This document shows positions 12,476 to 42,336 of a DNA stretch of 64,000 nt, one piece after another (positions within the stretch are counted from its first letter, which is position 1; each line of letters starts with the position of its first letter). Below the pieces are notes generated by a model, which saw nothing but the letters and a program-made list of their open reading frames with translations, ran no database searches and was not told the origin of the DNA. Both the position numbers and the translations under genes were made by a program. Location: positions 1-64,000 of IMG/VR virus record IMGVR_UViG_3300020477_000990, one strand, 5' to 3'.

Positions 12476-13582
12476 ATGAAGATTTGGTTAATAGATTTAG
12501 AATCAGTTGAAACAAGATATACTTGCCAATGGAAGAGCCACGTTCCTACATTATTATTACTACAAGGCTATGAAGTAGAAATAGTTGGTGGTGCAAGAGA
12601 TATACCTCCTGCAACTACACCAGGTGCATTTTTAAACTTTGGTGGAACTAACATTTATAAATCAACGCAAATAGAAAAAGTTGCTAGGGCATTTACTGAA
12701 GGTAGAGTAAGTGCAGGTGATCATTTTATTTTTACTGACGCTTGGCATCCTGGTGTTATACAATTAAAATATATGAGTGAATTATTAGGTATTAAAATTG
12801 TAACACATGGTTTATGGCACGCCGGCAGTTATGATCCAGCAGACTTTTTAGGTAGACTTATTGGTGATGAACCGTGGGTAAGATATGCAGAACAATCTAT
12901 GTTTGAGTGTTTTGATCATAATTATTTTGCAAGTGATTTTCATATTGATATGTTTGGTAAAACTTTTGACAATGCAATGAATCATGTTGGACTTACACCA
13001 CAAGCAAAAAATAAAAAAATTGTACGTACTGGATGGCCAATGGAATATTTAAGTGATACACTTAAACCTTATAATGGAGCAGAAAAAGAAAATATTATTT
13101 TATTTCCACATAGAATTGCACCAGAGAAACAACCTGACATATTTAAAGATTTAGCAACAGCATTACCAGAATATAAATTTATAGTTTGTCAAGAACAACA
13201 ATTATCAAAAGATGAATATCATAAATTATTAGCAAAATCTAAAATGGTGTTTAGTGCTAACTTACAAGAAACATTAGGGATATCACCGTATGAAGGTTTA
13301 CTAGTAGGATCAATGCCACTAGTACCAGATAGATTAAGTTATACAGAAATGTATGATGCAGATTGGAAATATCCGTCAGAGTATACTGAAACATGGGATG
13401 GTTATATAACAAATAAACAAGCATTAGTATCAATTATTAAATCAGATATGGAAAGCTATGTAGATAAACTTCCTAAATTACTTAAATTGGAACAAAATTT
13501 AACTAAAAATTACTTCTCTGCAAATAATCTTTTAAATACTATAAAGGATTATGTAAATGAGGAAGAAAAAGAAAAAGTTTGA
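12476..13582 (+). CDS. GT-B fold glycosyltransferase
   Basis: FPHRIAPEKQP and QETLGISPYEG...PLVPDRLSYTE (GT4-like EX7E). Confidence 0.78.
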   Translation: MKIWLIDLESVETRYTCQWKSHVPTLLLLQGYEVEIVGGARDIPPATTPGAFLNFGGTNIYKSTQIEKVARAFTEGRVSAGDHFIFTDAWHPGVIQLKYMSELLGIKIVTHGLWHAGSYDPADFLGRLIGDEPWVRYAEQSMFECFDHNYFASDFHIDMFGKTFDNAMNHVGLTPQAKNKKIVRTGWPMEYLSDTLKPYNGAEKENIILFPHRIAPEKQPDIFKDLATALPEYKFIVCQEQQLSKDEYHKLLAKSKMVFSANLQETLGISPYEGLLVGSMPLVPDRLSYTEMYDADWKYPSEYTETWDGYITNKQALVSIIKSDMESYVDKLPKLLKLEQNLTKNYFSANNLLNTIKDYVNEEEKEKV

Positions 13583-13859
13583 AGTAGAATTTGATATGGA
13601 AAGTGAAAGTAGGTTACCTGAATATATCTCATGGGAAGAAGAAGAGGTTATGTATGAACTTGCTAAATTTTTTCGTACAAAAATAAAAAATGGCCAATAT
13701 AGAGTAACTATGGCAGAAATAGTAGAAAAGTTTGGACATATTCCTGAACCTCATATGTATAATCAAATATTTGAAATAGCGGAAAGTCTTAATCATCCTG
13801 CATCTGGAATTACCCATAAAGGAAAGTATTATCCTTTAGGAAATTCTACTATACACTAA
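13557..13859 (+). CDS. Hypothetical protein
   Basis: ORF overlapping the GT end. Confidence 0.55.
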   Translation: MRKKKKKFEVEFDMESESRLPEYISWEEEEVMYELAKFFRTKIKNGQYRVTMAEIVEKFGHIPEPHMYNQIFEIAESLNHPASGITHKGKYYPLGNSTIH

Positions 13860-13870
13860 TAAAAAAATAC

Positions 13871-13936
13871 TTGCATTTTAAATCTAAAATTGTTATAATA
13901 AACTTTATAGGCAACCCACTGCCTTAACATCGGGAG
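13871..13936 (+). promoter_or_regulatory. folE promoter plus leader hairpin/pseudoknot candidate
   Basis: TTGCAT-N17-TATAAT with extended -10; AGGCA-ACCCAC-TGCCT then TAACATCGGGAG. Confidence 0.6.
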
Positions 13937-13943
13937 AACATGA

Positions 13944-14618
13944 ATGAGTGTAAGTGAAGATATTAAAAAAAGATTAAAAGAAGCAGGGAAGAGATTTCAT
14001 TGTAATGATAATATATCAGAATATATTAAAGAAGGTGAAATTGCACAAATACAAGAAGAAGTAGAAGAAAAAATGCAAGGAGTTTTGAATAGCCTTGTTA
14101 TTGACACAGCCAACGATCATAACACAAAAGATACAGCAAGGCGTGTAGCTAAAATGTACGTCAACGAAGTTTTTGGTGGTAGGTTTAATCCACCTCCAAG
14201 AGTTACAACTTTTCCAAATATGGGATACAAAAGTTTGTACACTAGTGGGCCAATTTCAATTAAATCAACCTGTGCCCATCATTTTCAAAATATAGTAGGT
14301 AATTGTTGGGTAGGCATTGTACCAAATGGTGAAGTTATTGGTTTGAGTAAGTTTAATCGTATAGTTCATCATATAGCAGAACGTCCACAAATACAAGAAG
14401 AAATGACATCGCAAATTGCAGATGAATTACAGAAGTATGCGAAAACAGAAAATATAGCAGTTGTAGTAAAAGCAGAGCATCATTGCATGACACATAGAGG
14501 TGTTAGGGAACATGAATCTGATATGACCACAGCAATTATGGAAGGCGGTTTTAGAGATAATGAAGCACTTAGACAAGAGTTTTATAATTTAATGCTGAAT
14601 ATGAAGGGTCATGAATAA
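13944..14618 (+). CDS. folE: GTP cyclohydrolase I
   Basis: STCAHHF, IGLSKFNR, RPQIQEE, HHCMTHRGV. Confidence 0.95.
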   Translation: MSVSEDIKKRLKEAGKRFHCNDNISEYIKEGEIAQIQEEVEEKMQGVLNSLVIDTANDHNTKDTARRVAKMYVNEVFGGRFNPPPRVTTFPNMGYKSLYTSGPISIKSTCAHHFQNIVGNCWVGIVPNGEVIGLSKFNRIVHHIAERPQIQEEMTSQIADELQKYAKTENIAVVVKAEHHCMTHRGVREHESDMTTAIMEGGFRDNEALRQEFYNLMLNMKGHE

Positions 14619-14883: not shown

Positions 14884-15167
14884 TGCAAAAAGTAAAAAAG
14901 TTGTTTATAGAATCTTATCAAGAAAGCCCATTTTCGTTTTGGTGTGAAACAATTGAAACTATATTATTAGTTGGTGCAAGTGCTGTTTTAACTTTTACTA
15001 TATTAGAACCAGCTACTTGGATATTTGTTCCAATGTATTTGGTTGGGTCAGCATTAGGAATAATTAGTTCAGTTATACGTAAAGCGGCTATGGTAATTTT
15101 TTTATGTAGTTGGTTTACACTTATGAATTTAATTGCTTTAATAGTTTTAATTATGGATGTAATATGA
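14880..15167 (+). CDS. Small 3-TM membrane protein
   Basis: Hydrophobic segments. Confidence 0.65.
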   Translation: MMQKVKKLFIESYQESPFSFWCETIETILLVGASAVLTFTILEPATWIFVPMYLVGSALGIISSVIRKAAMVIFLCSWFTLMNLIALIVLIMDVI

Positions 15168-15682
15168 AGGTAGGAATAACATTCTCAACATTTGATTTAT
15201 TTCATTCTGGTCATGTGTTAATGTTAAAAGAAGCAAAAGAAAGTTGTGATCATTTAATTGCGGCTATACAAACAGACCCAACTATTGATAGACCTGGAAC
15301 AAAAAATAAGCCAGTACAGTCTATTGTTGAAAGGCAAATACAAGTTAACGGTTGCAAATACGTTGATTCTATAGTAGTATATGAGAGTGAAAAGGATGTC
15401 GAAGACATTTTAAAAAGTACTAAAATTGATGTTAGGATTTTAGGAATTGAGTATAAGGATAAAGAATTTACAGGCAAAAGTATTTGCAAAGAAAAAGGAA
15501 TAGAATTAGTGTTTAATAGTAGAGATCATGATTGGAGTACTACAGAATTACGTAACAGGATAGGAAATGTTATGCCAAAAAAGTCTGAATCGTCTAGTCC
15601 TGGAAAGACATTTGATGAAAAAATGGATGAAGAATTTAAAGATTTAAGTTTTTTAAAATACAAATATAAAGGGAATGTATGA
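15164..15682 (+). CDS. Cytidylyltransferase (TagD-like, HxGH)
   Basis: FSTFDLFHSGH...WSTTELR. Confidence 0.88.
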   Translation: MKVGITFSTFDLFHSGHVLMLKEAKESCDHLIAAIQTDPTIDRPGTKNKPVQSIVERQIQVNGCKYVDSIVVYESEKDVEDILKSTKIDVRILGIEYKDKEFTGKSICKEKGIELVFNSRDHDWSTTELRNRIGNVMPKKSESSSPGKTFDEKMDEEFKDLSFLKYKYKGNV

Positions 15683-16632
15683 TGTACGCAGAAGAGTTAG
15701 TTAACAATTCAATTGGAAGGCAGTATTGGATTTATAAAGATGATGCTTTTTATCAACAAAGAATTGCAAATGCTGGTCCTTATCAAAAACAAAATTTATT
15801 AAGATTGCGAGAATTAAAACCAAATGCAAGAACTATATTAGACGTAGGTATGAATATTGGTATGAATACAATTGAATATGCCACGTGGGCTAAAAAAGTT
15901 CATGGGTTTGAACCAACTAAACAAACATATAATATGGCATTAAAAAATATAATATTGGCTAAAAAACAATTAAATGAAAATATGATTAAGCCATGGTATT
16001 TAAATGGTACTACAAATTTTAATGGAAAGTTTGGAGGATCTTTAGAAATGATAGGTGAAGTTAGTACATATAATCATGGGTTAGGTGATAAGCCAGGACA
16101 ATTTGAAATATTAATTAAAAAAGATAATGCTGGGCACAATCATATAGAAAATATTAATGTGCCGTTAGCTAATGGAAGAAAACGAAGAAGAACAGTTCAA
16201 CCAGAAAAAGAAATTGTAGAAGTTAAAACTTTAGATTCATATAATTTTGAAGATGTTGATATTATTAAAATTGATACAGAAGGTTATGAGTTTCCAGTAG
16301 TAATGGGTGCAGAGCAAACAATTGTTTCACAACGTCCTATTGTACAATTAGAAATGGTTGATGGGCAACCTGAACGTTTTGGATTTAGTTGTCAACAAAT
16401 ATATGATTGGTTTTTATCAAGAGATTTTGTAATTACATTATCTGATGGTACAGATGTTGGTACTAAATGGGAACATTACACTAAAAAAATGGAAAGATTC
16501 TTTATACATAAAAGTTTATTAAATGACGAATATCTTAAAGAAGTTGCAGTTAAAAGAACTAAAACAATACCTAGTAGTGAAGAAAAAAAATTAAAAGAAC
16601 AAATTGAACCAATAATGTTGGCACCGATATGA
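15679..16632 (+). CDS. FkbM-family methyltransferase
   Basis: LDVGMNIG, GFEP, IKIDTEGYE. Confidence 0.87.
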   Translation: MMYAEELVNNSIGRQYWIYKDDAFYQQRIANAGPYQKQNLLRLRELKPNARTILDVGMNIGMNTIEYATWAKKVHGFEPTKQTYNMALKNIILAKKQLNENMIKPWYLNGTTNFNGKFGGSLEMIGEVSTYNHGLGDKPGQFEILIKKDNAGHNHIENINVPLANGRKRRRTVQPEKEIVEVKTLDSYNFEDVDIIKIDTEGYEFPVVMGAEQTIVSQRPIVQLEMVDGQPERFGFSCQQIYDWFLSRDFVITLSDGTDVGTKWEHYTKKMERFFIHKSLLNDEYLKEVAVKRTKTIPSSEEKKLKEQIEPIMLAPI

Positions 16633-17111
16633 AAAAAGAATATTACAATTGGGAAAATATAGAAGATATGATATCTGATGTTGTACAGCAAATTGCTGTA
16701 GATGGAGATAACTTTAAACCAGATTACGTAGTAGGATTAACACGTGGAGGTTTAATACCAGCAACAATGTTAAGTCATTATTATCAAGTGCCAATGCATA
16801 CACTAGAAATTAAATTGCGTGACCATGCAGTTACGCCAGAATCAAATAAATGGATGGCGAAAGATGCAGTTGATGGAAAAAATATTTTAATTGTAGATGA
16901 TATTAATGATACAGGTGATACACTTGCTTGGATTAAACAAGATTGGGGAAAGTCAGGTGAAATAAATTGGCCTGCTAATATTAGATTTGCAGTTTTAGTT
17001 GAAAATGAGCCAAGTAAGTTTGGTGATGTTGATTATGTTTCAAAATTTATTAACAAAAACGAAAATCCTCAATGGATAGTATTTCCATGGGAAGAATGGT
17101 GGGCAATATGA
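16629..17111 (+). CDS. Purine phosphoribosyltransferase (Gpt-like)
   Basis: GLTRGGLIPA, LIVDDINDTGDT, WIVFPWE. Confidence 0.9.
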   Translation: MKKEYYNWENIEDMISDVVQQIAVDGDNFKPDYVVGLTRGGLIPATMLSHYYQVPMHTLEIKLRDHAVTPESNKWMAKDAVDGKNILIVDDINDTGDTLAWIKQDWGKSGEINWPANIRFAVLVENEPSKFGDVDYVSKFINKNENPQWIVFPWEEWWAI

Positions 17112-17551
17112 ATAAATGGAAAGATGAACCATATCCGTGGCACAATGAACCGGTAAACAGATATCCAGATGAATTTAAAGATAGTGTCTGGGCAAGTGGA
17201 GATAGAAAACCAGTTCATGATGAACCATGCTTTGCAGTATATGAAGATAAGTATCCGGTTAAAAAAGGACACTTGTTATATATTCCAAAAACTAAAGATG
17301 CTCCAGGAATGATTGGGTTATGTTTTCAAGAAGCATATCGAAAAGGAATGGAAATGGTCAATGAAGGAAAAATTACAGGATTTAATTTAGGTATGAACTT
17401 TGGAGAGTCAGCAGGTCAAAGTATTTTTTGGCCTCATGTACATTTTATACCAAGAACAGATGGAGATCAAACAGGTCGACCTAAAGGTGTAAGACGTGCA
17501 TATCCAGATGATCCTTATCAACCTGAAAATATGAAAAAGGAAGTGAAGTAA
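17108..17551 (+). CDS. HIT-family nucleotide hydrolase
   Basis: DKYPVKKGHLL...AGQS...PHVHFIPR. Confidence 0.85.
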   Translation: MNKWKDEPYPWHNEPVNRYPDEFKDSVWASGDRKPVHDEPCFAVYEDKYPVKKGHLLYIPKTKDAPGMIGLCFQEAYRKGMEMVNEGKITGFNLGMNFGESAGQSIFWPHVHFIPRTDGDQTGRPKGVRRAYPDDPYQPENMKKEVK

Positions 17552-18131: not shown

Positions 18132-19058
18132 ATGACATTAGCACAGCATGAGTTTGGTAAAACTGTAGAAAAGAAGTTTTATTATTCAGAAATATTTCAC
18201 AGTATTCAAGGTGAAGGACATTATACAGGTGTTCCTACTGCTTGGATAAGATTCTTTTTATGTAATTTACAATGCAATGGATTTGGACAAAAAGATCCAA
18301 CAAATCCAGATACATATGAATTACCATTTGAAGACTTTGATGTATCAAGTGTAGATAAAGTAGAAGATCTTCCAGTATGGGATAAAGGTTGTGATTCGTC
18401 ATATACTTGGGCAAAAAAATTTAAACAATTAATGGGGTATGAAACTCCTACAGTATTAGCAAATAAAATTGTAGATATAATGAAAAATGAAAGTAATCCA
18501 GATGGATTATTTTTACATCCTGTTACAGGACAAAGACAACATTTATGTTTTACAGGTGGTGAACCATTAATGGTATTGGCACAAACAGCGATTGTGGGAA
18601 TTTATCAAGAATTACAAAAGCAAAATAATTTGCCAGGATCAATGACATTTGAAACTAATGGAACACAGAAATTAAGACCACAGTTTATAGATTGGGTAAA
18701 CTCAATTGATACAGAAGTGTTTTTTAGTTGTAGTCCAAAATTATTTACAGTATCAGGTGAAAAGTCTATGAAAGCAATTAAACCTGAAATAGTTGCAGAG
18801 TATAGAAAACTTTCTGATAAAGGACAATTAAAGTTTGTTGTAGGTTCTGAAGATAGAGAATGGGAAGAAATGGAATCAGTAATTAAACAATTTAAAGAAG
18901 CAGGTGTTGACTGGCCTATATGGGTTATGCCAACAGGTGCTAGAGAAGAAGAGCAAATAGAAGGTGCTGGTAAAGTAGCAGAAAAGGCTTTTAAACGAGG
19001 TTATAATGTTGCGGCAAGAGTTCACGTATATTTGTTTGGAAATGCAATAGGTACATAA
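18132..19058 (+). CDS. queE: 7-carboxy-7-deazaguanine synthase (radical SAM)
   Basis: EIFHSIQGEG, RFFLCNLQC...CDS, TGGEP, ETNGT, SPK, RVH. Confidence 0.88.
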   Translation: MTLAQHEFGKTVEKKFYYSEIFHSIQGEGHYTGVPTAWIRFFLCNLQCNGFGQKDPTNPDTYELPFEDFDVSSVDKVEDLPVWDKGCDSSYTWAKKFKQLMGYETPTVLANKIVDIMKNESNPDGLFLHPVTGQRQHLCFTGGEPLMVLAQTAIVGIYQELQKQNNLPGSMTFETNGTQKLRPQFIDWVNSIDTEVFFSCSPKLFTVSGEKSMKAIKPEIVAEYRKLSDKGQLKFVVGSEDREWEEMESVIKQFKEAGVDWPIWVMPTGAREEEQIEGAGKVAEKAFKRGYNVAARVHVYLFGNAIGT

Positions 19059-19387: not shown

Positions 19388-19533
19388 TTGAAGAAGAACT
19401 TAAATTAAGTAAAACACAAAAAGAGTGGATAAAAGAGTTTATAAAAAAACATACAGCAAGAGGTTCACATAGATGGGCATTTTGGTGTGAAGGAATTATA
19501 ATAGGTTTAATAATAGGAACATTAATGTTGTGA
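19384..19533 (+). CDS. 49-aa protein with C-terminal TM, not in ORF track
   Basis: GTGA overlaps at both ends. Confidence 0.5.
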   Translation: MIEEELKLSKTQKEWIKEFIKKHTARGSHRWAFWCEGIIIGLIIGTLML

Positions 19534-19970
19534 TAAAAGATTTTTTAAAAAGTCGTGTACGAACTATATATGATAGAGATGGTAAAAAACCATATATGAT
19601 TAGATACTACTTGTTTTTAAAAGATAGAAAATGGTTTCCATTTAACTTTACATTACATAAAATTTGCTTATCAGACGAACCAACATTACATGATCATCCA
19701 TGGCCATGGATGTCAATTATTCTTAAAGGTGGGTATTGGGAATGGACTAGTAAGAAAAATCCAAAATGGAAAGGTCCTGGAAGAATGTCTTTTAGCTCAT
19801 CTAAAAGATTACATAGATTGCAATTAGGAAAAGATGTTTGGAATAATACTATTCCTTGTTGGACATTGTTTTTTATGGGTCCGAAAAGACGTGATTGGGG
19901 ATTTAAAGTTAAAGACAAATGGATTAATAACGAAAAATACTTATCTGATCGTAAAAAAGATGATAGCTAA
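19530..19970 (+). CDS. Cupin-like phage protein
   Basis: LHDHPW...GGYWE...HRL. Confidence 0.7.
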   Translation: MIKDFLKSRVRTIYDRDGKKPYMIRYYLFLKDRKWFPFNFTLHKICLSDEPTLHDHPWPWMSIILKGGYWEWTSKKNPKWKGPGRMSFSSSKRLHRLQLGKDVWNNTIPCWTLFFMGPKRRDWGFKVKDKWINNEKYLSDRKKDDS

Positions 19971-20316
19971 ACAAATACCTACTTGTATTAATTATGGTTG
20001 TAATAGATTAGTTACTAAAAGTGGAAAGTATAAACTAAGGCCAGTTTGTTGGAAATGCCACGAATCATCATATGGTGCCAGACAATTAGAAGAAGGTGTA
20101 AAGTTTTTTAAAAAAGAATATTGTGAAAATGTTAATGGATTTTTAGGATATAAATGTACAGCACATATTCCTTATTCAGGAGCATTAGAATTAGATCATA
20201 AAGATGGTAATCAATATAATAATGTAGAGGCCAACATACAAACATTATGTAAAGTGTGTCATTCTTGGAAAAGTAAGCAAAGTAATGATTATAAAAAGAC
20301 TAAAGAAACAATTTGA
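19960..20316 (+). CDS. HNH/Zn-finger protein
   Basis: CWKCH; LELDHKDGNQYNN...NIQTLCKVCH. Confidence 0.75.
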   Translation: MIAKQIPTCINYGCNRLVTKSGKYKLRPVCWKCHESSYGARQLEEGVKFFKKEYCENVNGFLGYKCTAHIPYSGALELDHKDGNQYNNVEANIQTLCKVCHSWKSKQSNDYKKTKETI

Positions 20317-23713: not shown

Positions 23714-23949
23714 TGAAAAAAGTAGTTTTATATTCTAAAAATTTATGTGGATATTGCACAATGGCTAAATCATGGTTAAACAATAAAGGTGTACAATATG
23801 AAGAAATTAGTATTGAAGAGCCAGAAATACGCGAAAAGTTCATGAAAGATTATCCACAGCTTCGTCAAATGCCACAAATCTTTGTAGATGGTGAAAATAT
23901 TGGTGGTTATCAGCAATTAATTAAACTAGACGAATCATCATTAAAATAG
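23713..23949 (+). CDS. Glutaredoxin
   Basis: CGYC, PQIF, IGGY. Confidence 0.9.
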   Translation: MKKVVLYSKNLCGYCTMAKSWLNNKGVQYEEISIEEPEIREKFMKDYPQLRQMPQIFVDGENIGGYQQLIKLDESSLK

Positions 23950-31940: not shown

Positions 31941-32046
31941 TCTCATTTTGGATATGGCATATTCTAGCGATTTGTACTGTAATAGCAGTATCATTTAGCA
32001 TAGGATATAGTGTAGGTAAAGCAACGAAAAAAGAAAGAAAAATAAA

Positions 32047-32358
32047 ATGGACAAACAACTCGGAGATACGTTAATTAAACGTAAAATAGTTTCTGTAGAT
32101 ACTGAAATTGAAGCCTGGTATAAAGCAAATGAATTTGGTGGTGGAACATTTGACCAAAAAGGCTTTTTTACTATAAATGAAATAGAGCAAAAAGACAATG
32201 GAGCAGTATGTTTCCATGCTAGATCTAATATTGATGGCAAATGGTATGATTTTAACTATAGCAATATAATTGCAATCGATGGCATGGAGCCAGAAAAACT
32301 AGCAAATGCGTATGGAATTAAACTTCCAAAGGTAAATAAAAATACTAACAAGAAATAA
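32047..32358 (+). CDS. Hypothetical protein
   Basis: IDGMEPEKLA motif. Confidence 0.65.
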   Translation: MDKQLGDTLIKRKIVSVDTEIEAWYKANEFGGGTFDQKGFFTINEIEQKDNGAVCFHARSNIDGKWYDFNYSNIIAIDGMEPEKLANAYGIKLPKVNKNTNKK

Positions 32359-32363
32359 GCATT

Positions 32364-33392
32364 ATGAAAAACAATGTAGCTATCATCGGTAATGGTAAAA
32401 TTGGCAGAGTCATCGCCAGTTTATTAAAATCAGAGTATTTCAATGTAACTATAGCAGATCAAGAACCACAAGGCGGAGCAGTATTGCTTGATGCCACAGA
32501 TCAAAAAGCACTTGAACATTTTATACAAGGTAAAGATGTTGTAGTATCAGCGGCACCATATTTTTTAAATAAAAAAATAGCCTTAGTTGCTTCTGAAATG
32601 GGAGTAGCATATTTTGATTTAACAGAAGATATTGATGTAACAAGTTATATTCAAAGTTTAAACACAAAAACATTCATGATGCCACAATGTGGGTTGGCGC
32701 CTGGAGCAGTTAATATTATAGGTTCTAATCTAATAAAAGAATTTGATGAAGTGCATGATGTTCAAATGAGAGTAGGAGCATTACCGCGATATCCATCAAA
32801 CGAAATGAGTTATTATTTAACTTGGTCTACAAATGGTTTAATAAATGAGTATTGTAATTTGTGTGATGCTATAGTAGATGGCCAAAAATTAGAAATTCCA
32901 CCATTAACAGGTGTAGAAAGAATTTATATTGATGGTAGAAAATACGAAGCATTTAATACTTCAGGTGGAGTAGCAACAATGTGTGAAACATTTGATGGCA
33001 AAGTACAAAATTTAAGTTATAAAACTATTAGGTATCCTGGACATAGAGACAGGATGAATTTTTTATTACAAGATTTAGGATTAAAAAGAAATAGAGATAA
33101 AATTGCAGACCTTTTTGATCAACAAGTTCCATATACAACAGAAGATGTCATCGTTATGCTAGTTAAAGTAATTGGAGTAGCTAACGGAAAACTAATCGAA
33201 CGTTCATATCAAAAAAGTATTTTTGGACAAGATGGAATGAGTGCAATTCAGAGGTCGACAGCGTCAGGAGTTTGTGCTATAGTGTTAGCTTATTGTAGAG
33301 ATGAAATAACAGGTGAAGGTTTCATTAAACAAGAAGACATTAATTGGGATACATTTATTAACAACAAATTCGGACAAGTATATAGCAAATGA
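32364..33392 (+). CDS. Saccharopine/lysine-6-dehydrogenase family protein
   Basis: IIGNGKIG, YFDLTED, CGLAPG, YKTIRYPGH. Confidence 0.87.
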   Translation: MKNNVAIIGNGKIGRVIASLLKSEYFNVTIADQEPQGGAVLLDATDQKALEHFIQGKDVVVSAAPYFLNKKIALVASEMGVAYFDLTEDIDVTSYIQSLNTKTFMMPQCGLAPGAVNIIGSNLIKEFDEVHDVQMRVGALPRYPSNEMSYYLTWSTNGLINEYCNLCDAIVDGQKLEIPPLTGVERIYIDGRKYEAFNTSGGVATMCETFDGKVQNLSYKTIRYPGHRDRMNFLLQDLGLKRNRDKIADLFDQQVPYTTEDVIVMLVKVIGVANGKLIERSYQKSIFGQDGMSAIQRSTASGVCAIVLAYCRDEITGEGFIKQEDINWDTFINNKFGQVYSK

Positions 33393-36445: not shown

Positions 36446-36705
36446 AAATACTTAGAATTATATTATGGCCTTTTAAGATGTTGTCAAACATATTATCTGC
36501 AAATTACTGGGCAAACAAAATAGCCGATAAAACCAATATGCATGAAAAGGTAAAAGGTAGTAGATTTAATAGATGGCAGAATAGTCTACCTCAACCATAT
36601 AGATTTATATTCAAAACATCTATGTTGATAATATGTATCTACCTTATTGAGATGTATTTTAATCTAGTAGGTATGTCAATGTTGCCATGGAGATGGGATT
36701 GGTAA
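36442..36705 (+). CDS. Membrane hypothetical protein
   Basis: ATGA overlap; hydrophobic C-terminus. Confidence 0.6.
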   Translation: MKILRIILWPFKMLSNILSANYWANKIADKTNMHEKVKGSRFNRWQNSLPQPYRFIFKTSMLIICIYLIEMYFNLVGMSMLPWRWDW

Positions 36706-37484
36706 TGAAAATAATTGTAACAGGTAGCACAGGATTTATTGGAAAGCATTTAGTTAAAAAATTAAATGAAGATGGCCATGATATTATACAATGGGATAGA
36801 TCACATGGTTGGGATATTGCTGATTTTACAGCAGATAAAGTACAATTTGATGTAGACTTTGTAATACACTTGGCCGCAATAGCAGATGTTAGACGTAGTT
36901 TAAAAGAACCAGAATTATATTGGAAAACTAATGTAGAATATAGTAAAAAGATTTTTGATCTTTGTTATAAAAATAATATTCCAGTTGTATATGCATCAAG
37001 TTCTTGCGTACACGCATGGTGGAAGTCGCCATATGGTACAAGTAAAAAAGCAATGGAGGCAATAGCACATCCAGGGCAAATTGGATTAAGATTTACTACT
37101 GTTTTTGGTGAAGGTGCTAGAGATACTATGCTTATGTCAAGAATACGTAATGGAACAGTTAAGTTTGCTACAGAACATATTAGAGATTTAATTTTTGTAG
37201 AAGATATAGTGTCAGCAATTATGATATTTGTTAATACCGGAACTAAAAATAAAAATACAACGTATGAAGTAGGAACTGGCCAAGGAACAAAAGTATCAGA
37301 TATAGTAAAACACGCAGGATATAATGTTCCTACACAAGAAGGCCAAGATGCAGAAGCTGATGATAATACAGCAAATAATTCAGAGTTAAGAAAATTAGGT
37401 TGGAAGCCAACATTAACAGCAAAAGAGTGGATAGATATTAGGATTGCCGTAGATTATACAAATAGATTAGGTGAACCAAAATAA
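36705..37484 (+). CDS. NAD-dependent epimerase/dehydratase (extended SDR)
   Basis: TGSTGFIG, HLAA, ASSS, YGTSK. Confidence 0.9.
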   Translation: MKIIVTGSTGFIGKHLVKKLNEDGHDIIQWDRSHGWDIADFTADKVQFDVDFVIHLAAIADVRRSLKEPELYWKTNVEYSKKIFDLCYKNNIPVVYASSSCVHAWWKSPYGTSKKAMEAIAHPGQIGLRFTTVFGEGARDTMLMSRIRNGTVKFATEHIRDLIFVEDIVSAIMIFVNTGTKNKNTTYEVGTGQGTKVSDIVKHAGYNVPTQEGQDAEADDNTANNSELRKLGWKPTLTAKEWIDIRIAVDYTNRLGEPK

Positions 37485-37562: not shown

Positions 37563-38306
37563 ATGTTAAGAGATGTATTATTAGACATTGTGAAGCATAC
37601 TCATTCATTGGGGTTTATTCAAGCAGTTAAAATTGAAAATACCGATGAAGGAACTATGGTTGAAGCAATGGATGAAGAAAGAACAGTTGTTCTAAAAGGT
37701 AAATTGAACAACAAATTAAACGAAGTACCTGGCTTGGTTGGAATGGGTAGACTTGGTGTATTATCAGGTTATTTAAATTACGAAGCATATGGTAAAGAAG
37801 GTGCAAACATTGAAGTTGTAACTGCATCAAGAGATGGTAAAGATGTTGCAGAAGAAATGAAGTTTACATCACCAGGTGGATATACTGCAAATTATAGATT
37901 TATGGTAAGTTCATTAATTGAAGAACAACTTAAAACTATTAAGTTTAAAGGTGTTAGTTGGGATGTTAGTATACAGCCAACAGCACAAAATTTAAAAGAC
38001 CTTTCATACTTCAATGGTATTATGGGTGGGTTTGAACCTACATTTGTTGCAAAAACAGATGGTACTACATTAAAATTTTATATTGGTGATGGTGCTAATG
38101 ATAGAGTTGAAATACCATTTGCTACAAACGTTGAAGGTAAACTTACAAAAGGTTGGGCTTGGCCATTAGCACAGGTATTAAGTATTTTAAAATTAAGTGA
38201 TACTTCAAAGGCTACTATGGGTTTCAGTGATCAAGGAGCAATGCAAATTGAAATTGATTCTGGAATAGGCAAATACGAATATATACTTCCTGCACGGAGC
38301 CAATAG
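37563..38306 (+). CDS. Probable sliding clamp (gp45/PCNA-like)
   Basis: ~250 aa, C-terminal YEYILPA, context with PolB and clamp loader; inferred. Confidence 0.6.
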   Translation: MLRDVLLDIVKHTHSLGFIQAVKIENTDEGTMVEAMDEERTVVLKGKLNNKLNEVPGLVGMGRLGVLSGYLNYEAYGKEGANIEVVTASRDGKDVAEEMKFTSPGGYTANYRFMVSSLIEEQLKTIKFKGVSWDVSIQPTAQNLKDLSYFNGIMGGFEPTFVAKTDGTTLKFYIGDGANDRVEIPFATNVEGKLTKGWAWPLAQVLSILKLSDTSKATMGFSDQGAMQIEIDSGIGKYEYILPARSQ

Positions 38307-39829
38307 TGAATAAACCATACGGTGAAGATTTAACTGCAAGTCATAAAGATTATGCTGTCTTCTTACCAGCGGTAAGTGGATTTTATCAAACTTACGTTAG
38401 TAAACAACAGCAAACATTTGGTACAGATAAACAATTTGTTCCAGATGAACGTATTCCAAAAGGTTTTGAACAAGGTATTGAAGGATTAAATTATCTTAAT
38501 AAAGAAAAAGGATATTTTAATTACAAATACGGATTATATTCGGCAGGTCACGCACATCTAGATGTTGACAAGTCAATGGTTCAAGAATCTATGTTTCATA
38601 CAAGAAACAAAAATGATACCATTATAGTTGGTGATTCCGGCGGTTACCAAATTGGTAAAGGAATATTAAAATTTGATTGGCAAAATTTTAAAGGTAAGTC
38701 AGCAAATGATATGCGTACAAAAATCTTGCATTGGTTAGAACTTACAGCAGATTGGTCAATGGTATTAGATATTCCTAGTTGGGCTTGTGATGCCACACAT
38801 AGTCCAAAGACAGGATTAAAATCATATGGTGACTGTATTTCAGGTACAGTACATAATAACGAATTTTTTTTAAAAAATAGATTAGGACAAACGAAGTTTC
38901 TTAATGTGTTGCAAGGCTTTGATGCTCAAACGGCTGACGTTTGGTATGATGCTGTTAAGCATTTTCCATTTGAAGGCTGGGCATTTGGCGGAAACAATAT
39001 GTGTGATATGACTATGGCTCTCCGACGCCTAATTATATTGCGAGATTCTAAATTACTAGATAATAGGGATTGGGTTCACTTCTTAGGTACTAGTAAATTA
39101 GATTGGGCTTGTTTCTTGACGTCCATCCAACGTCAATTGAGAAAACACGTTAATGAGAACCTAACCGTATCTTATGATAGTGCAAGTGCCTTTGTGGCAA
39201 CAGCACATGGTTTGGTTTACACTTCACCAGTTCATACTAATAAGCGATGGTCTTATATTATGGATAAGGCAACAGATAGTAAAGCCTTAAAACTTTCTAC
39301 TATTCCTTTTCCATGGGAGTCGGAAATCGGTAAACGATTGACAATAGGAGACATTTGCTGGTATGGACCTGGTGATTTAAACAAAGTTGGAAAAGAAGGT
39401 AAAACTTCTTGGGATTCATTTGCTTATGCATTAATGATGGGTCATAATGTAAATCAACATATTAAGATTGTACAAAAAGCAAATCAAATAATGGATATTG
39501 AATCAGTAATTCATAAACCAGATTATAGGCATTGGAGAAAAGCAAAACAAAAAGAGACAGCAACAGAATATAGTGATTGGTGTCCTAGAAATGTACTGTA
39601 TTTTAATTCATTTATTGAAGACTTTTTTAAATCAGAAAAACCTATGGAAATGCTAAATGATAATAAAGCATTTTTAGATGACATTAAAGGTGTTAGATGG
39701 ACAGGTAATTCAGGAAATGTGTTTAATGATTTATTTGATGTAGAAACTAAAAGCTCAATGGGTGATGAATTATCTAATCCTAACGATGAGAAGTTAGAGA
39801 AATTAGGGAAAGTTTTAGAAACTATTTAA
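38306..39829 (+). CDS. TGT-fold transglycosylase, DpdA-like
   Basis: DSGGYQ, MVLDIP, NVLQG, GWAFGG, HFLG, SYDSAS in TGT order. Confidence 0.78.
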   Translation: MNKPYGEDLTASHKDYAVFLPAVSGFYQTYVSKQQQTFGTDKQFVPDERIPKGFEQGIEGLNYLNKEKGYFNYKYGLYSAGHAHLDVDKSMVQESMFHTRNKNDTIIVGDSGGYQIGKGILKFDWQNFKGKSANDMRTKILHWLELTADWSMVLDIPSWACDATHSPKTGLKSYGDCISGTVHNNEFFLKNRLGQTKFLNVLQGFDAQTADVWYDAVKHFPFEGWAFGGNNMCDMTMALRRLIILRDSKLLDNRDWVHFLGTSKLDWACFLTSIQRQLRKHVNENLTVSYDSASAFVATAHGLVYTSPVHTNKRWSYIMDKATDSKALKLSTIPFPWESEIGKRLTIGDICWYGPGDLNKVGKEGKTSWDSFAYALMMGHNVNQHIKIVQKANQIMDIESVIHKPDYRHWRKAKQKETATEYSDWCPRNVLYFNSFIEDFFKSEKPMEMLNDNKAFLDDIKGVRWTGNSGNVFNDLFDVETKSSMGDELSNPNDEKLEKLGKVLETI

Positions 39830-40048
39830 ATGAATGAAGATCATATGGCGAAAAGATACACAGCAGAATATATGGCAAACGAATATAGAAACGAAGCGGC
39901 AGACGTAAAATATAAGTATAAAGAATTAAGGAATTTAGTAGTTGAACTAATAGATGCTATTCCAGAAGACAGAATATTGTGGCATCAAGATGTAAATGAC
40001 TTAATAACAAAAGTAAAACAGAAAATGGAGAATGATGATGTCAGATAA
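39830..40048 (+). CDS. Hypothetical protein
   Basis: ORF in operon. Confidence 0.55.
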   Translation: MNEDHMAKRYTAEYMANEYRNEAADVKYKYKELRNLVVELIDAIPEDRILWHQDVNDLITKVKQKMENDDVR

Positions 40049-40442
40049 TATTGATTTGAAAGAGTATTCTGATTTTGTAGATAAGGTTACAAGTGATGAA
40101 TCAAAAGATAGTGGAGCATTTAGGCAAAGATTAGACGATTTAGGAGATGGTGATATTCCTAGGTTACTTACAGCGTCATTAGGGTTATCAGCTGAATCAG
40201 GTGAGTTTACTGAGATAGTTAAAAAGTTAGTATTTCAAGGTAAGCCATTAACTGATGAAACTAAAGCACATATGGCCAAAGAATTAGGAGATGTAATTTG
40301 GTATTGGATACAAGGGTGTATGGCAATTGGAATTGACCCAAATGAAGTTATTAACACAAATAAAGAGAAGTTAATGGCCAGATATCCGGCCGGAGAGTTT
40401 TCAGCTATAAGAAGTGAAAATAGAAAAGAGGGTGATATCTAG
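40032..40442 (+). CDS. MazG-like NTP pyrophosphohydrolase
   Basis: GLSAESGEFTEIVKK...KELGDVIWY...NKEKL.ARY. Confidence 0.88.
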   Translation: MMMSDNIDLKEYSDFVDKVTSDESKDSGAFRQRLDDLGDGDIPRLLTASLGLSAESGEFTEIVKKLVFQGKPLTDETKAHMAKELGDVIWYWIQGCMAIGIDPNEVINTNKEKLMARYPAGEFSAIRSENRKEGDI

Positions 40443-40478: not shown

Positions 40479-41000
40479 ATGAAGAGAACATACGATAATA
40501 ATGAACAACGTGATGATGTTTTAACTTTTACTGGAATAGAAGTTGAAAGAACACCATGTTATGGTCTCAAAACATATTTTGTAGTTGGAGTTCCAAGAGA
40601 AGATCCTGTAGTTTTTATTAATAAAGTAATGAAGCAGGAATGTGAACAAATTTATTTTGGTGCAAATCATTCATTAAAAGATTGGAAAGATGATTGGACT
40701 GGTCCAATGACTGCATTAATAAAAGAAAGTCTTAATGCTAAATTTTGGGTTACATTAGATGTTGATGGTACAAAACTACCTCCAATGTTAACTGATTTTT
40801 TAACAAACAAATATTTTAGTGTAACTTATTCAATACAAGTTCCTAATGTTGATAAAATTAATGGTAATATTAATATTAAAATAGATGATGAAGATTTTGA
40901 AGCAACAAATAAAGGTGTTTGGTCAACTACTTTAAGATCAATTAAAGTTAAAAATAATTTTACTCCATGGGATGATTATAAGAAAGATACAGTAATATGA
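40479..41000 (+). CDS. Phage hypothetical protein (IYFGANHS)
   Basis: FTGIEVERTP..G.KT.FV; KIDD.DF.ATN.GVW. Confidence 0.75.
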   Translation: MKRTYDNNEQRDDVLTFTGIEVERTPCYGLKTYFVVGVPREDPVVFINKVMKQECEQIYFGANHSLKDWKDDWTGPMTALIKESLNAKFWVTLDVDGTKLPPMLTDFLTNKYFSVTYSIQVPNVDKINGNINIKIDDEDFEATNKGVWSTTLRSIKVKNNFTPWDDYKKDTVI

Positions 41001-41185
41001 AAAAAGTATCTATAACATTAGAAGTGGGAGACAAAATAGATTTAGGTCGTTTTAGAAATGTACGAGCTGAAATAATTGATATTAAAAAAGACCAATATGG
41101 ACAGCCTGTAATTGTAACAAGTAAAGGCGATAAAAAAGCATTAACATTTAGGTTAGTTAAATTAGATAATGACAAAAAGAGCTAA
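40997..41185 (+). CDS. Small hypothetical protein
   Basis: ATGA overlap. Confidence 0.6.
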   Translation: MKKVSITLEVGDKIDLGRFRNVRAEIIDIKKDQYGQPVIVTSKGDKKALTFRLVKLDNDKKS

Positions 41186-41321
41186 AATAAAGAAAAAAGA
41201 TTATCAAGATTATTATGATGTAATTGTTACAGATCAATGTCCACCAGAAGATATTGCATATTGGTTTAGTGATTTAAAATTTTTAGAATGGTTTAGAAAA
41301 CAAAAGGATAGAAAAGAATAA

Positions 41322-41672
41322 ATGGACAGTAAAATAAAAGAACAAATTAAAAGTAATATTGATAATAATGATGTTTTTCTTTTTATGAAAGGAACACCTG
41401 ACGCACCACAATGTGGATTTTCAGGAATGGTGTGTGGAGTATTGAAAAAATTTAATGTGACATTTAATCATTGTAATGTTTTAGAAAATAATGATATTAG
41501 AGAAGGAATAAAAGAATATAGTGATTGGCCAACAATACCTCAGTTATATATAAAAGGAGAGTTTGTAGGTGGAGCAGATATTGTTAGAGAAATGGTTCAA
41601 TCTAGTGAGTTAATTGATTTGCTTAATTCAAAAGAAATTAAAAATAATTATACAAAGGAGAATGTAAAATGA
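41322..41672 (+). CDS. grxD: Monothiol glutaredoxin Grx4
   Basis: FMKGTP..PQCGFS, WPTIPQLY, GGADI. Confidence 0.95.
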   Translation: MDSKIKEQIKSNIDNNDVFLFMKGTPDAPQCGFSGMVCGVLKKFNVTFNHCNVLENNDIREGIKEYSDWPTIPQLYIKGEFVGGADIVREMVQSSELIDLLNSKEIKNNYTKENVK

Positions 41673-41878
41673 AAAACTTTTTTCTTAATGTATGGTATTT
41701 TTTTGTTGGTGTGCCAATAGATTTAACTTATTGGTTTAATGGACAAGAAGTTAATGTAAAAGTTCGTAACTTTAGAAATATGAGAGCTGGACGTATAACT
41801 TTTAAAAATATTGATACAGGAAAAATAGAAACAATAAGCTCACCAGATTTAAAATATAAAATTGTAAAGGAGGACTAA
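41669..41878 (+). CDS. Hypothetical protein
   Basis: AGGAG RBS. Confidence 0.55.
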   Translation: MKNFFLNVWYFFVGVPIDLTYWFNGQEVNVKVRNFRNMRAGRITFKNIDTGKIETISSPDLKYKIVKED

Positions 41879-42336
41879 TGGCACAAAAAAGAATGATATG
41901 GGTAACATTTCGCAAAGAAGGTATTCACAAATATCCTGCGGCATTAGATGATCCTAAATTAGCAACAGGTAAAGATGATGATGTTAGTTTTTTAGGATAT
42001 CCACATAGGCATATATTTCATTTTAAAGTTGCTATTGAAGTGTTTCATGATGATAGAGATATTGAATTTATACAATTCAAAAGATGGCTTGAAGCATTAT
42101 ATCAAGGAACATTAGAATTAAATTATAAGTCTTGTGAAATGATTGCAGATGATTTGTATGCACAGATTAAACAAAAATATCCAAAAAGAGATGTTAACAT
42201 AGAAGTTTCAGAAGATGGAGAAAATGGAGCATCAATTTCATATCCAAAAGCTGAAAGTGTAAAAACAAAATATAAAACTTATTCTGAAATGGAAGAAGAC
42301 TTTGCTGATGAGTATTCAGCACAAAATACATTGTAA
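41878..42336 (+). CDS. T-fold QueD paralogue (DpdL-like CDG decarboxylase candidate)
   Basis: LGYPHRHIF (LxxxHRHxF), SCEMIA, VSEDGENG; lacks canonical QueD CxxxHGH. Confidence 0.7.
   Translation: MAQKRMIWVTFRKEGIHKYPAALDDPKLATGKDDDVSFLGYPHRHIFHFKVAIEVFHDDRDIEFIQFKRWLEALYQGTLELNYKSCEMIADDLYAQIKQKYPKRDVNIEVSEDGENGASISYPKAESVKTKYKTYSEMEEDFADEYSAQNTL

Follow-up and report, generated by a model that had tools for sequence, protein, structure and literature searches.

A glycosyltransferase in the conserved core of a predicted 7-deazaguanine DNA-modification module of a marine jumbo phage and its relatives

In phages that replace guanine by 7-deazaguanines, FolE, QueD and QueE make 7-carboxy-7-deazaguanine (CDG) from GTP, and a transglycosylase of the DpdA type inserts the deazaguanine into DNA as a protection against restriction. 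A DpdA is considered to be present in every phage with these bases, and insertion to be post-replicative (PMC10516641). In Cellulophaga phage phiST, whose DNA holds dDG, the genome encodes FolE, QueD, QueE, DpdL, a phosphoribosyltransferase (PRTase) and a MazG-like gene, but no glycosyltransferase (GT). DpdL, a QueD paralog recognised by the motif LxxxHRHxF, is the proposed CDG decarboxylase, although this activity has never been shown; ACP17 DpdL plus DpdA alone gave no dDG in E. coli, and it was suggested that other enzymes may be needed (PMC10516641). The virion DNA of phage PA5oct resists G-site restriction enzymes and is attacked by nucleases that sense modified G (PMC12191111). A glycosylated deazaguanine in DNA is not known to have been described.

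The window analysed here is a stretch of 64,000 nucleotides, positions 1 to 64,000 of IMG/VR record IMGVR_UViG_3300020477_000990, and forms the start of a complete 328-kb marine jumbo phage genome. The first-pass annotation had described a 7-deazaguanine pathway with linked sugar-transfer enzymes between positions 12,476 and 42,336, and this observation is confirmed: every gene that it listed is a real open reading frame on the + strand, with the start it had assigned. The features are as follows.

12476..13582 (+), glycosyltransferase with a predicted GT-B, GT4-like fold, related to queuosine mannosyltransferase (QTMAN)-like proteins
13944..14618 (+), GTP cyclohydrolase I (FolE), the first step from GTP
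15110..15682 (+), cytidylyltransferase-like nucleotidyltransferase (TagD / HldE domain II type), which probably activates a sugar phosphate or polyol phosphate
15679..16632 (+), FkbM-family methyltransferase
16629..17111 (+), type I purine phosphoribosyltransferase (Xpt/Gpt-like)
17072..17551 (+), HIT-family nucleotide hydrolase or transferase
18132..19058 (+), QueE-like radical SAM enzyme (CDG synthase type)
19530..19970 (+), cupin ('cysteine dioxygenase'-like PHROG)
36687..37484 (+), SDR nucleotide-sugar epimerase/dehydratase, directly upstream of the clamp and DpdA genes
37563..38306 (+), PCNA/gp45-like sliding clamp
38306..39829 (+), long TGT-fold transglycosylase (DpdA-like, 507 aa), proposed to exchange guanine in DNA for the deazaguanine
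40032..40442 (+), MazG-type nucleotide pyrophosphohydrolase
40479..41000 (+), conserved protein without assigned function between DpdA and DpdL
41878..42336 (+), DpdL, the proposed CDG decarboxylase

FolE is identified by Pfam (GTP_cyclohydroI, E 3e-47) and PHROG (E 1e-54). The QueE-like enzyme has no Pfam hit, but matches PHROG 2076 ('QueE-like radical SAM', E 6e-53), and its best PDB sequence hits are CDG synthases (E 1e-4); its cysteine spacing is unusual, with C44-x3-C48 and the next cysteine at position 87. The T-fold protein carries L39-GYP-H43-R44-H45-I-F47, an exact LxxxHRHxF motif, lacks the QueD-specific insertion, and is 58% identical to ACP17 DpdL and 35% identical to phiST DpdL. 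The first-pass assignment of this motif to DpdL rather than QueD is correct (PMC10516641). No QueC, QueF or QueD lies in the window, as had been stated; however, the absence of a canonical QueD holds for the window only, since one lies at genome positions 269701-270150. The genome has no canonical QueC, but three divergent QueC-like PP-loop paralogs are found at 81.3, 107.9 and 119.1 kb.

The accessory genes were confirmed by Pfam: the nucleotidyltransferase (CTP_transf_like, E 1e-11; the best NCBIfam hit, heptose-1-P adenylyltransferase, is far below its cut-off), FkbM (E 2e-18), the PRTase (E 3.5e-18, with Xpt as best NCBIfam hit), HIT (E 2.7e-5), the epimerase (E 1e-29; PHROG nucleotide-sugar epimerase, E 3e-52) and MazG (E 1e-8). 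The cupin was assigned by PHROG 4786 (E 1e-32). The clamp has no Pfam hit, but its structural neighbours in the Atlas are gp45/PCNA clamps (TM 0.74-0.75), and it is 43% identical to PA5oct gp170. Searches of Pfam, PHROG and the Atlas gave no lead for the protein at 40479, which is homologous to ACP17 gp122, a gene located between FolE and DpdA (E 6e-8).

Comparison with related IMG/VR loci shows that the two halves of the window form one array. We examined 160 loci anchored on the GT, 80 in which the GT is about 62% identical (set 1) and 80 further loci (set 2); the GT is thus present in all by construction. The order is (nucleotidyltransferase-epimerase)-sliding clamp-DpdA-unknown-DpdL-GT-PRTase-(HIT)-FolE-QueE. 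In sets 1 and 2, respectively, DpdL was found in 75 and 78 loci, DpdA in 65 and 74, the clamp in 59 and 65, the protein of unassigned function in 65 and 61, FolE in 65 and 60, QueE in 62 and 47, the PRTase in 56 and 53, the cupin in 48 and 32, and HIT, following the PRTase, in 20 and 30. The nucleotidyltransferase was found upstream of clamp-DpdA in 33 loci of set 2 but only 2 of set 1, and the epimerase occupied the same position as here in 41 loci of set 2, so that these two genes recur in a large sub-clade. In the present window the module is split by about 15 kb of chaperone and protease genes; it does not represent two independent clusters. The grouping is more than chance, as the genes recur together in the 160 GT-anchored loci and in unrelated cultured phages. 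Much of the synteny comes from related marine phages, so those loci are not independent, and the module lies among replication genes, whose order is conserved anyway. The cupin family is widespread in unrelated phages (89 records match, mostly Mycobacterium phages without deazaguanine genes), as is the nucleotidyltransferase family.

FkbM and MazG were found in none of the 160 loci. In cultured phages FkbM occurs only in Caulobacter jumbo phages and others without DpdL, and it is an accessory specific to this genome; phiST has a MazG-like gene beside its DpdL, but it is unrelated. The suggestion in the first-pass annotation that the base might be further glycosylated or methylated has, for methylation, no comparative support.

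The TGT-fold enzyme has no Pfam, PHROG or NCBIfam hit. Its AF2 model (pLDDT 90) gives only tRNA-guanine transglycosylases as top PDB matches (Foldseek E 1e-7, with all of the top 50 being TGT; VIA Z 18 over about 300 residues). Residues D110, S111, G113 and D291 are invariant, and D155 nearly invariant, in 46 diverse homologs, and profile alignment (hhalign) with ACP17 gp123 gives a probability of 96.6%. The family comprises 954 representative clusters, and the homolog in Vibrio phage 2.275.O lies beside QueF, QueC and FolE. These matches, together with the resemblance of the GT to tRNA-queuosine mannosyltransferase-type proteins and the presence of 16 tRNA genes in the genome, including tRNA-Asp(GTC) and tRNA-Asn(GTT), raise the possibility that the target is position 34 of phage or host GUN-anticodon tRNAs, as a phage version of glycosyl-queuosine. 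We consider this unlikely. All DpdA enzymes share the TGT fold; PA5oct, which has the same four genes in a row, has restriction-resistant virion DNA with a modified G; the DpdL pathway yields dDG in phiST DNA; and the gene always immediately follows the sliding clamp gene, among replication genes. In addition, a small Methylobacterium prophage carries the operon beside a primase and an endonuclease, which suits an anti-restriction role better, and the PRTase makes sense for bulk release of guanine from DNA rather than for a few tRNA positions.

The PRTase tracks these systems closely. It matches only 24 of 50,697 phage records, mostly of phages already linked to deazaguanine DNA: the phiST group, Flavobacterium immuto 2-6A, BUCT-ZZ01 and the PA5oct group. 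This distribution, almost only in phages with full-replacement deazaguanine systems, the conservation of the PRTase in the module, and the presence of the nucleotide hydrolases HIT and MazG could also fit a pre-replicative route, in which the PRTase attaches the deazapurine base to PRPP, as TubE and ToyH do in tubercidin and toyocamycin synthesis, the nucleotide is converted to a dNTP and incorporated by the polymerase, MazG and HIT clear competing nucleotides, and the TGT-fold enzyme has a side role. Such a route appears improbable, given the published view of post-replicative insertion, the invariant catalytic-type residues of the TGT-fold enzyme, the lack of a PRTase in the minimal prophage operon and the lack of conservation of MazG.

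The GT matches Pfam Glycos_transf_1 only below the cut-off (E 3e-4), but its AF2 model (pLDDT 83) has a GT-B fold. Its profile aligns with QTMAN-like proteins at 95% probability (E 1e-8), compared with 1.1% or less for eight generic GT4 controls, and the top Swiss-Prot structural hit by E-value is a tRNA-queuosine mannosyltransferase. However, the first ~130 residues, the acceptor half, do not align with QTMAN, and Pfam QTMAN_N does not hit; nor does the fold search separate QTMAN (TM 0.56) from other GT4 enzymes (0.60-0.65). UDP-glucose:tetrahydrobiopterin glucosyltransferase structures are also among the PDB fold matches (rank 20, E 3e-8). Since FolE and a PTPS-family protein are the first steps of pterin synthesis, and one GT-bearing phage infects Synechococcus PCC 7942, the genes might instead make a pteridine glycoside, like the tetrahydrobiopterin glucoside of cyanobacteria, without involvement of DNA. 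This is very unlikely: DpdL lacks the catalytic cysteine of PTPS/QueD, the GT is linked just as tightly to the transglycosylase and to QueE, which have no role in pterin glycosides, and the pterin GT scores no better than dozens of other GT4 enzymes.

The best explanation is a DpdL-type 7-deazaguanine DNA-modification module whose conserved core includes a glycosyltransferase. In this view FolE, the distant QueD and the QueE-like enzyme would make CDG, DpdL would convert it to 7-deazaguanine, and the TGT-fold enzyme would swap guanine in newly made phage DNA for this base, with the PRTase returning the released guanine to the GTP pool, possibly helped by HIT. The GT would then add a sugar to the deazaguanine, either in DNA or on the free base before insertion, with the donor supplied or tailored by variable nucleotide-sugar genes, here the nucleotidyltransferase and the epimerase, and perhaps with FkbM methylating the sugar; the product would protect the DNA from restriction. 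Of this scheme, the analysis establishes the gene identities, folds and conserved motifs, the conserved gene order, the co-variation of the GT with DpdL and with TGT-like DpdAs, and the specific profile similarity of the GT to QTMAN-like proteins. Every enzymatic activity, DNA as the target, the deazaguanine as acceptor of the GT and the atom carrying the sugar are inferred, for this phage from assembled contigs alone. 7-Deazaguanine has no hydroxyl, amine side chain or carboxyl to accept a sugar, so that a C-, N- or ester-linked sugar, or a different DpdL product, has to be assumed. The scheme as a whole is about as likely as not, and a glycosylated deazaguanine in DNA is plausible but unproven, perhaps slightly less likely than not. 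The interpretation in the first-pass annotation is thus supported in part: the pathway and its link to the GT hold, whereas the roles it gave to FkbM and MazG do not have comparative support. Genes for sugar nucleotides recur inside the module of relatives, including the nucleotidyltransferase, SDR epimerase, UDP-glucose dehydrogenase and GFO/IDH/MocA oxidoreductase, and SDR genes also follow the GT in other clades. No ThyA-like hydroxymethylase that could supply a pyrimidine acceptor was found in the genome.

The main alternative is a plain dDG system as in phiST, with the GT and sugar genes modifying, for example, another phage or host molecule and being carried along by linkage. It is favoured by phiST itself, by the lack of an obvious sugar acceptor in dDG, by the occurrence of the nucleotidyltransferase family in phages without deazaguanine genes, and by a distant GT homolog in Xanthomonas phage PhiXhv-12, which lies with GlmS and a deacetylase and no deazaguanine genes. 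We nevertheless regard it as rather unlikely, because the GT is linked to the pathway far more tightly than the window alone could show. Among 185,579 prokaryote species genomes only three loci with this GT were found, and all three sit beside deazaguanine module genes: two carry DpdA-like and DpdL genes, and the third, a short MAG contig, only FolE. The Methylobacterium prophage carries a four-gene operon, DpdA-x-DpdL-GT, with overlapping reading frames and no FolE, QueD or QueE nearby, while its host has its own QueC and QueD. Of the 23 GT-hit records among the 50,697 phage records, 18 are also DpdL-hit records, and the GT is immediately adjacent to DpdL or DpdA in at least five unrelated cultured phage lineages: PA5oct (gp168-167-166), ACP17 (gp122-126), BUCT-ZZ01, BUDD and Phosso. 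In a sample anchored on DpdL, the GT lies within 2.5 kb in 41 of 54 loci; it accompanies TGT-like DpdAs in 36 of 36 loci and the phiST-type DpdA3 in 0 of 5.

The window is the first 64 kb of a 328,149-bp virus record with direct terminal repeats that is rated complete. The GC content is about 31%, GC skew is positive in every 2-kb bin and essentially all genes, including essentially all long ORFs, lie on the + strand. The record starts and ends inside the same tRNA-Ala gene (1-76 and 328075-328149), which belongs to the terminal repeat. Near-identical sequence occurs in marine metagenomes from 2014 to 2025 across many studies, and pieces of the DpdA-like gene occur, letter for letter, in contigs of three metatranscriptome runs; this is compatible with transcription but does not prove it. 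A megablast search of the region against 50,697 phage records returned no match.

The genes named in the first-pass annotation are real ORFs beginning where it placed them, and its observation is confirmed. The features that bear on the analysis are as follows.

13944: FolE, Pfam E 3e-47.
15110: nucleotidyltransferase, passes Pfam.
15679: FkbM methyltransferase, passes Pfam.
16629: type I PRTase, passes Pfam.
17072: HIT protein, passes Pfam.
18132-19058: QueE-like protein, PHROG 'QueE-like radical SAM' E 6e-53.
19530-19970: cupin.
19834-20316: HNH endonuclease ORF, overlapping the 3' end of the cupin gene in another frame; it may be a homing endonuclease inserted into or beside the cupin gene.
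36687: SDR epimerase, passes Pfam.
37563-38306: protein predicted to be a PCNA/gp45-like sliding clamp.
38306: 507-aa protein with a predicted TGT fold (DpdA-like).
40032: MazG, passes Pfam.
40479: conserved protein without a family assignment.
41878: T-fold protein, DpdL by motif and homology.

The best PDB sequence hits of the QueE-like protein are CDG synthases (E 1e-4), but there is no Pfam hit, Radical_SAM included, and the NCBIfam QueE models score far below their cut-offs. Its Cys pattern is C44-x3-C48, with the next Cys only at residue 87, after a 38-residue acidic insert; the usual radical SAM CxxxCxxC is missing, which may be why Pfam Radical_SAM does not hit. The T-fold protein carries L39-G-Y-P-H43-R44-H45-I-F47, which is exactly the LxxxHRHxF signature published for DpdL in place of the CxxxHGH of QueD (PMC10516641). 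By tblastn it is 58% identical to ACP17 gp125 (E 4e-39) and 35% identical to phiST CGPG_00067 (E 9e-11), the two DpdL proteins named in that paper. It aligns with the DpdLs of ACP17, phiST, BUCT-ZZ01 and BUDD, groups with DpdLs in the alignment and lacks the QueD insertion, while the QueD encoded elsewhere in the genome keeps the Cys. PA5oct DpdL (gp166; 11766-12140 of locus L009) reads H-F-H where the published signature and all other DpdLs aligned here read H-R-H.

The 507-aa protein at 38306 was not recognized by Pfam, PHROG or NCBIfam. A profile built from 46 sequences found no TGT among PDB sequences, pairwise BLAST to phiST DpdA3 found nothing, and PF01702 (Pfam TGT) does not hit the protein or anywhere in the genome; only structure prediction and profile-profile comparison were informative. 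An exhaustive search found 954 representative clusters of homologs, all unnamed. In 46 diverse members of 27-53% identity, D110, S111, G113 (the GDSGGxQ motif) and D291 are invariant and D155 is at least 90% conserved; by motif resemblance, the aspartates may be equated with D102, D156 and D280 of TGT. An AlphaFold model built on that alignment has pLDDT 90 and pTM 0.89. Its 50 best PDB matches in Foldseek are all tRNA-guanine transglycosylases (E 1e-7), and VIA-align gives Z 17.4-18.6 over about 300 residues against the bacterial, archaeal and human enzymes. The family profile matches ACP17 gp123 at 96.6% probability, and the protein is related to the ACP17, BUDD and BUCT-ZZ01 enzymes, but phiST DpdA3 is matched at only 64%. 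Thus the predicted fold and the catalytic-type residues of a DpdA are present, although the protein is not a detectable sequence member of phiST DpdA3 or of Pfam TGT. The homolog in Vibrio phage 2.275.O lies beside QueF, a YhhQ-like transporter, QueC, an amidotransferase and FolE; the family therefore keeps company with deazaguanine genes of more than one pathway type. The upstream gene at 37563, termed a probable clamp in the first-pass annotation, has gp45/PCNA clamps as its language-model and structural neighbours in the ESM Atlas. It is 43% identical to PA5oct gp170, which is annotated 'structural protein' from virion mass spectrometry.

In the rest of the genome, a canonical QueD is located at 269,701-270,150, and no canonical QueC is present; the one full PP-loop hit near QueD is NAD synthase. 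FolE, QueD, QueE-like and DpdA-like proteins are all present in addition to DpdL; however, three divergent, paralogous QueC-like ORFs of 298, 265 and 238 aa exist elsewhere in the genome.

81289-82182 (+), locus L001:781-1674 (L numbers denote extracted loci).
107904-108698 (-), locus L002:1498-2292.
119133-119846 (-), locus L004:1501-2214.

These have an SGGxDS PP-loop and a QueC-like C-terminal Cys motif, but Pfam QueC matches only their last ~55 residues, at 24.9, 22.6 and 17.8 bits against a cut-off of 22, so that two of them are just above it. In a tblastn search none matches any of the 50,697 phage records, and no link to the module could be shown. There is no ThyA-like hydroxymethylase in the genome, so the glycosyltransferase (GT) has no obvious pyrimidine acceptor. 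The phage also encodes many translation and proteostasis genes (window 22583-33392 and genome 266-277 kb, locus L006), namely a DegP-like protease, DnaJ, peptide deformylase, ClpB, ClpX, EF-G and IF3, together with 16 tRNAs, a tmRNA with the tag ADENLALAA, NAD synthase, AdoMet decarboxylase, a saccharopine-dehydrogenase-like enzyme, a class 3 lipase and two more radical SAM proteins.

To establish whether the GT belongs to the pathway, 160 IMG/VR loci anchored on relatives of the GT were fetched and homologs of the window's proteins were located in them; the GT, DpdL and DpdA each have more than 590 IMG/VR hits. The gene order is almost invariant: (nucleotidyltransferase-epimerase)-clamp-DpdA-40479 family-DpdL-GT-(cupin)-PRTase-(HIT)-FolE-QueE-small protein-RNase H. 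In the first 80 loci, DpdL is found in 75, DpdA in 65, FolE in 65, QueE in 62, PRTase in 56 and HIT in 20, most misses being at contig ends; in the second 80, DpdL is found in 78, DpdA in 74, the epimerase in 41 and the nucleotidyltransferase in 33. QueD is inside the module in 14 and 6 loci, respectively. A conserved ORF of about 85 aa sits between DpdL and the GT in 67 of the first 80 loci (9763-10017 of L042 and 66 others; also 2973-3194 of locus L179), with no Pfam hit and no detectable homolog in this window or genome. The window therefore holds the same module cut in two, at 12.4-21.9 kb and 36.7-42.3 kb, by a block containing a DegP-like protease, a lipase, DnaJ, deformylase, ClpB, a saccharopine-dehydrogenase-like gene and the DNA polymerase. 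Other relatives carry further sugar-nucleotide enzymes at variable places in the module: UDP-glucose/GDP-mannose dehydrogenase, a GFO/IDH/MocA oxidoreductase and a Zn-ADH-like protein.

Not every neighbouring gene belongs to this arrangement. FkbM and MazG, which the first-pass annotation had listed among the linked genes, are absent from all 160 loci. The nucleotidyltransferase is common in unrelated phages and counts only as a recurrent accessory; the best NCBIfam hits of the nucleotidyltransferase and the epimerase point to an ADP-heptose pathway, but both are far below their cut-offs. The cupin was considered as a hydroxylase that could create a sugar acceptor, but its family is widespread in phages without deazaguanine genes and there is no specific support for this role. 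Protein 40479 gave no lead in Pfam, PHROG or the Atlas and is not related to the 201-aa ORF of the Methylobacterium operon described below, to PA5oct gp164 or to phiST CGPG_00066.

Since these marine loci are kin, distant phages were also examined. Among the 50,697 phage records the GT matches 23, of which 18 are also DpdL-hit records. PA5oct has DpdA-GT-DpdL in a row, the GT being gp167, followed within 2 kb by the PRTase and QueE; the cyanophage BUCT-ZZ01 has QueE-PRTase-x-QueD-FolE-x-DpdA-DpdL-GT; BUDD has FolE-...-GT-DpdA-DpdL-QueE; and in Phosso the GT starts 6 bp after DpdL. ACP17 has FolE-gp122-DpdA-GT-DpdL-QueE, where gp122 is a homolog of protein 40479 and gp124 is the GT. These phages use two different transglycosylase families, one long (500-600 aa) and one of the ACP17 type (416-437 aa). 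The PRTase matches only 24 phage records, most of them phages already linked to deazaguanine DNA: the phiST group, Flavobacterium immuto 2-6A, BUCT-ZZ01 and the PA5oct group. A distant homolog of the GT (28% identity; hhalign 99%) in Xanthomonas phage PhiXhv-12 and relatives (5669-8903 of locus L175) lies with GlmS and an LmbE-type deacetylase and with no deazaguanine genes nearby; this may be a different amino-sugar modification system.

In 185,579 prokaryote species genomes the GT was found only three times. Two are MAG contigs, one carrying the whole phage module and the other, of 4.6 kb, only the GT and FolE. The third is a prophage in the chromosome of Methylobacterium sp. NFXW15 (5590-9068 of locus L180), with a serine recombinase on one side and a VapE-like primase, endonuclease I and HNH on the other. 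Its four-gene operon, DpdA-like-201aa-DpdL-GT, has overlapping genes and no FolE, QueD or QueE nearby, while the host has its own QueC and QueD elsewhere; this looks like the minimal specific gene set. In a sample anchored on DpdL instead, 41 of the 54 loci with enough flank have the GT within 2.5 kb, including all 36 loci with a TGT-like DpdA and none of the 5 with a phiST-type DpdA3. A plain dDG system with an unrelated GT is contradicted by this tight, repeated linkage, and we consider it unlikely.

Pfam detects only a sub-threshold Glycos_transf_1 in the GT (20.8 against 26.4 bits). ESM-Atlas structural neighbours of its cluster included bacterial 'tRNA-queuosine alpha-mannosyltransferase' families, and such QTMAN_N proteins were taken from Bacteroidota genomes for profile comparison. 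The phage GT family matches two of these by hhalign at 92-95% probability (E 1e-8 to 5e-7) over about 165 residues, including the P(D/N)RL(S/A)Y.E segment, whereas eight generic Glycos_transf_1 proteins from the same bacterial genome give 1.1% or less. The match covers the end of the N-domain and the donor-binding half; it starts only at about residue 133 of the GT, and none of 20 family members hits the QTMAN_N domain (PF12038) at E up to 5. The AlphaFold model (pLDDT 83) is a two-Rossmann GT-B, matching GT4 enzymes (PimB', MshA, BshA, GlgM, glycogen synthase) at TM 0.55-0.65. In Swiss-Prot the best hit by E-value is Drosophila tRNA-queuosine mannosyltransferase, but many GT4 enzymes follow closely and have higher TM-scores, and the fold search does not discriminate among them. 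The pteridine glucosyltransferase BGluT ranks 20th or lower in the PDB search, in the same E range as many others, and the family profile does not hit it among PDB sequences at E up to 1; a pterin glycoside cannot be excluded but is less supported, and appears very unlikely. The predicted fold is thus GT4-like, and only the profile comparison singles out the queuosine-glycosylating family.

The most economical reading is that GTP would be turned into CDG by FolE, QueD and QueE, and that DpdL would then process CDG, decarboxylation being the published proposal, which has never been shown (PMC10516641). The clamp-linked TGT-fold enzyme would exchange guanine in DNA for the product, the PRTase would salvage the released guanine, and the GT would add a sugar whose donor is shaped by the variable nucleotide-sugar genes. 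The gene content, its order and the linkage of the GT to DpdL are shown by the comparisons presented here; the enzymatic steps, including decarboxylation by DpdL and the action of the transglycosylase on DNA rather than tRNA, are inferred, the latter only indirectly from the modified G of PA5oct DNA, the position behind the clamp gene and the Vibrio phage 2.275.O neighbourhood. The weak point is chemical, since plain 7-deazaguanine has no usual acceptor group. Possible ways out, all of them inference, are a C-glycoside on the electron-rich pyrrole carbon, an N-glycoside, an ester on dCDG, or a DpdL product that is not 7-deazaguanine. Two published observations fit a missing step: PA5oct DNA has a modified G of unknown structure (PMC12191111), and ACP17 DpdL plus DpdA without the GT gave no dDG in E. 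coli (PMC10516641). A tRNA target gains from the QTMAN likeness and from the phage tRNA-Asp and tRNA-Asn genes, but it loses on the PA5oct DNA data, the clamp linkage, the prophage operon and the PRTase, and is improbable. A nucleotide-level route through the PRTase cannot be excluded but is less supported still. The interpretation offered in the first-pass annotation is thus partly supported, and is sharpened by these comparisons.

It is possible, though on balance slightly less likely than not, that phages pairing DpdL with a TGT-like DpdA and this QTMAN-like GT carry a sugar-bearing 7-deazaguanine in their DNA; these include this marine jumbo phage, hundreds of its relatives, PA5oct, ACP17, BUCT-ZZ01, BUDD, Phosso and the Methylobacterium prophage. 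It would be the first glycosylated purine-type base in any genome, the sugar would vary between phages through the interchangeable nucleotide-sugar genes embedded in the module, and the chemistry would have to be new for DNA. Eight 7-deazaguanine DNA bases are known, none of which carries a sugar, and glycosylation of DNA bases is known only for hydroxymethyl-pyrimidines. The deazaguanine pathway itself is of a described type; in the literature that could be searched, no paper was found describing a glycosylated deazaguanine in DNA, this GT, or the clean split between GT-bearing and phiST-type systems. The conserved GT marks a large, mostly marine group of phages, including cultured ones, whose final base has not been identified, and may explain the open results for ACP17 and for PA5oct, a therapy-relevant Pseudomonas phage. 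If true, the reading would extend the arms-race logic of T-even sugar coats to purines, connect phage DNA modification to the enzyme family that glycosylates queuosine in tRNA, and offer a new enzyme set for site-directed DNA glycosylation. Even if the sugar goes elsewhere, the module definition (clamp-DpdA-40479 family-DpdL-GT-PRTase) and the split from phiST-type systems would still stand, and both are useful for annotation.

The dDG system of Cellulophaga phage phiST (Cui, Hutinet et al. 2023, PMC10516641) shares FolE, QueD, QueE-like and DpdL with the LxxxHRHxF motif, and in both there is no canonical QueC or QueF; a Gpt-like PRTase lies elsewhere in the phiST genome and a MazG-type gene beside its DpdL. 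The transglycosylase here is, however, a 507-aa TGT-like protein with a DSGG motif and not the 259-aa DpdA3, and a GT, the conserved protein 40479 and nucleotide-sugar genes are added. The Pseudomonas jumbo phage PA5oct (Wroclawvirus), whose DNA resists G-site restriction enzymes (PMC12191111), has homologs of the clamp, DpdA-like protein (40% identity), GT (45%), DpdL (58%), PRTase and QueE in one cluster, gp170 to gp162. It belongs to a different phage family and host, and its cluster is contiguous where that of the present phage is split. The records annotate its DpdA-like gene, the GT (in most of them) and DpdL as hypothetical proteins, and the paper names only QueE and PTPS. The cluster of Acidovorax phage ACP17 holds the same six families, but its DpdA belongs to a shorter, 424-aa sister family.

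In T-even phages, hydroxymethylcytosine is glucosylated by alpha- and beta-glucosyltransferases, so that there too a phage GT-B enzyme is coupled to a base-modification pathway, with varied sugars for counter-defence (PMC13216743). The base in that case is a pyrimidine with a hydroxymethyl acceptor made at the nucleotide level, and T4 glucosyltransferases are not among the listed PDB or Swiss-Prot fold matches of the GT described here. The tRNA-queuosine alpha-mannosyltransferase QTMAN/GTDC1 and its bacterial QTMAN_N homologs differ from the phage GT in the N-terminal acceptor domain, which is not detectably related. QTMAN acts on the cyclopentenediol of queuosine in tRNA, a group that is not made here, whereas the presumed target of the phage enzyme is DNA. 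Both are nevertheless GT4-type GT-B enzymes, by prediction in the case of the phage protein, with specific profile similarity in the donor-binding half, and QTMAN glycosylates a 7-deazaguanine nucleoside.
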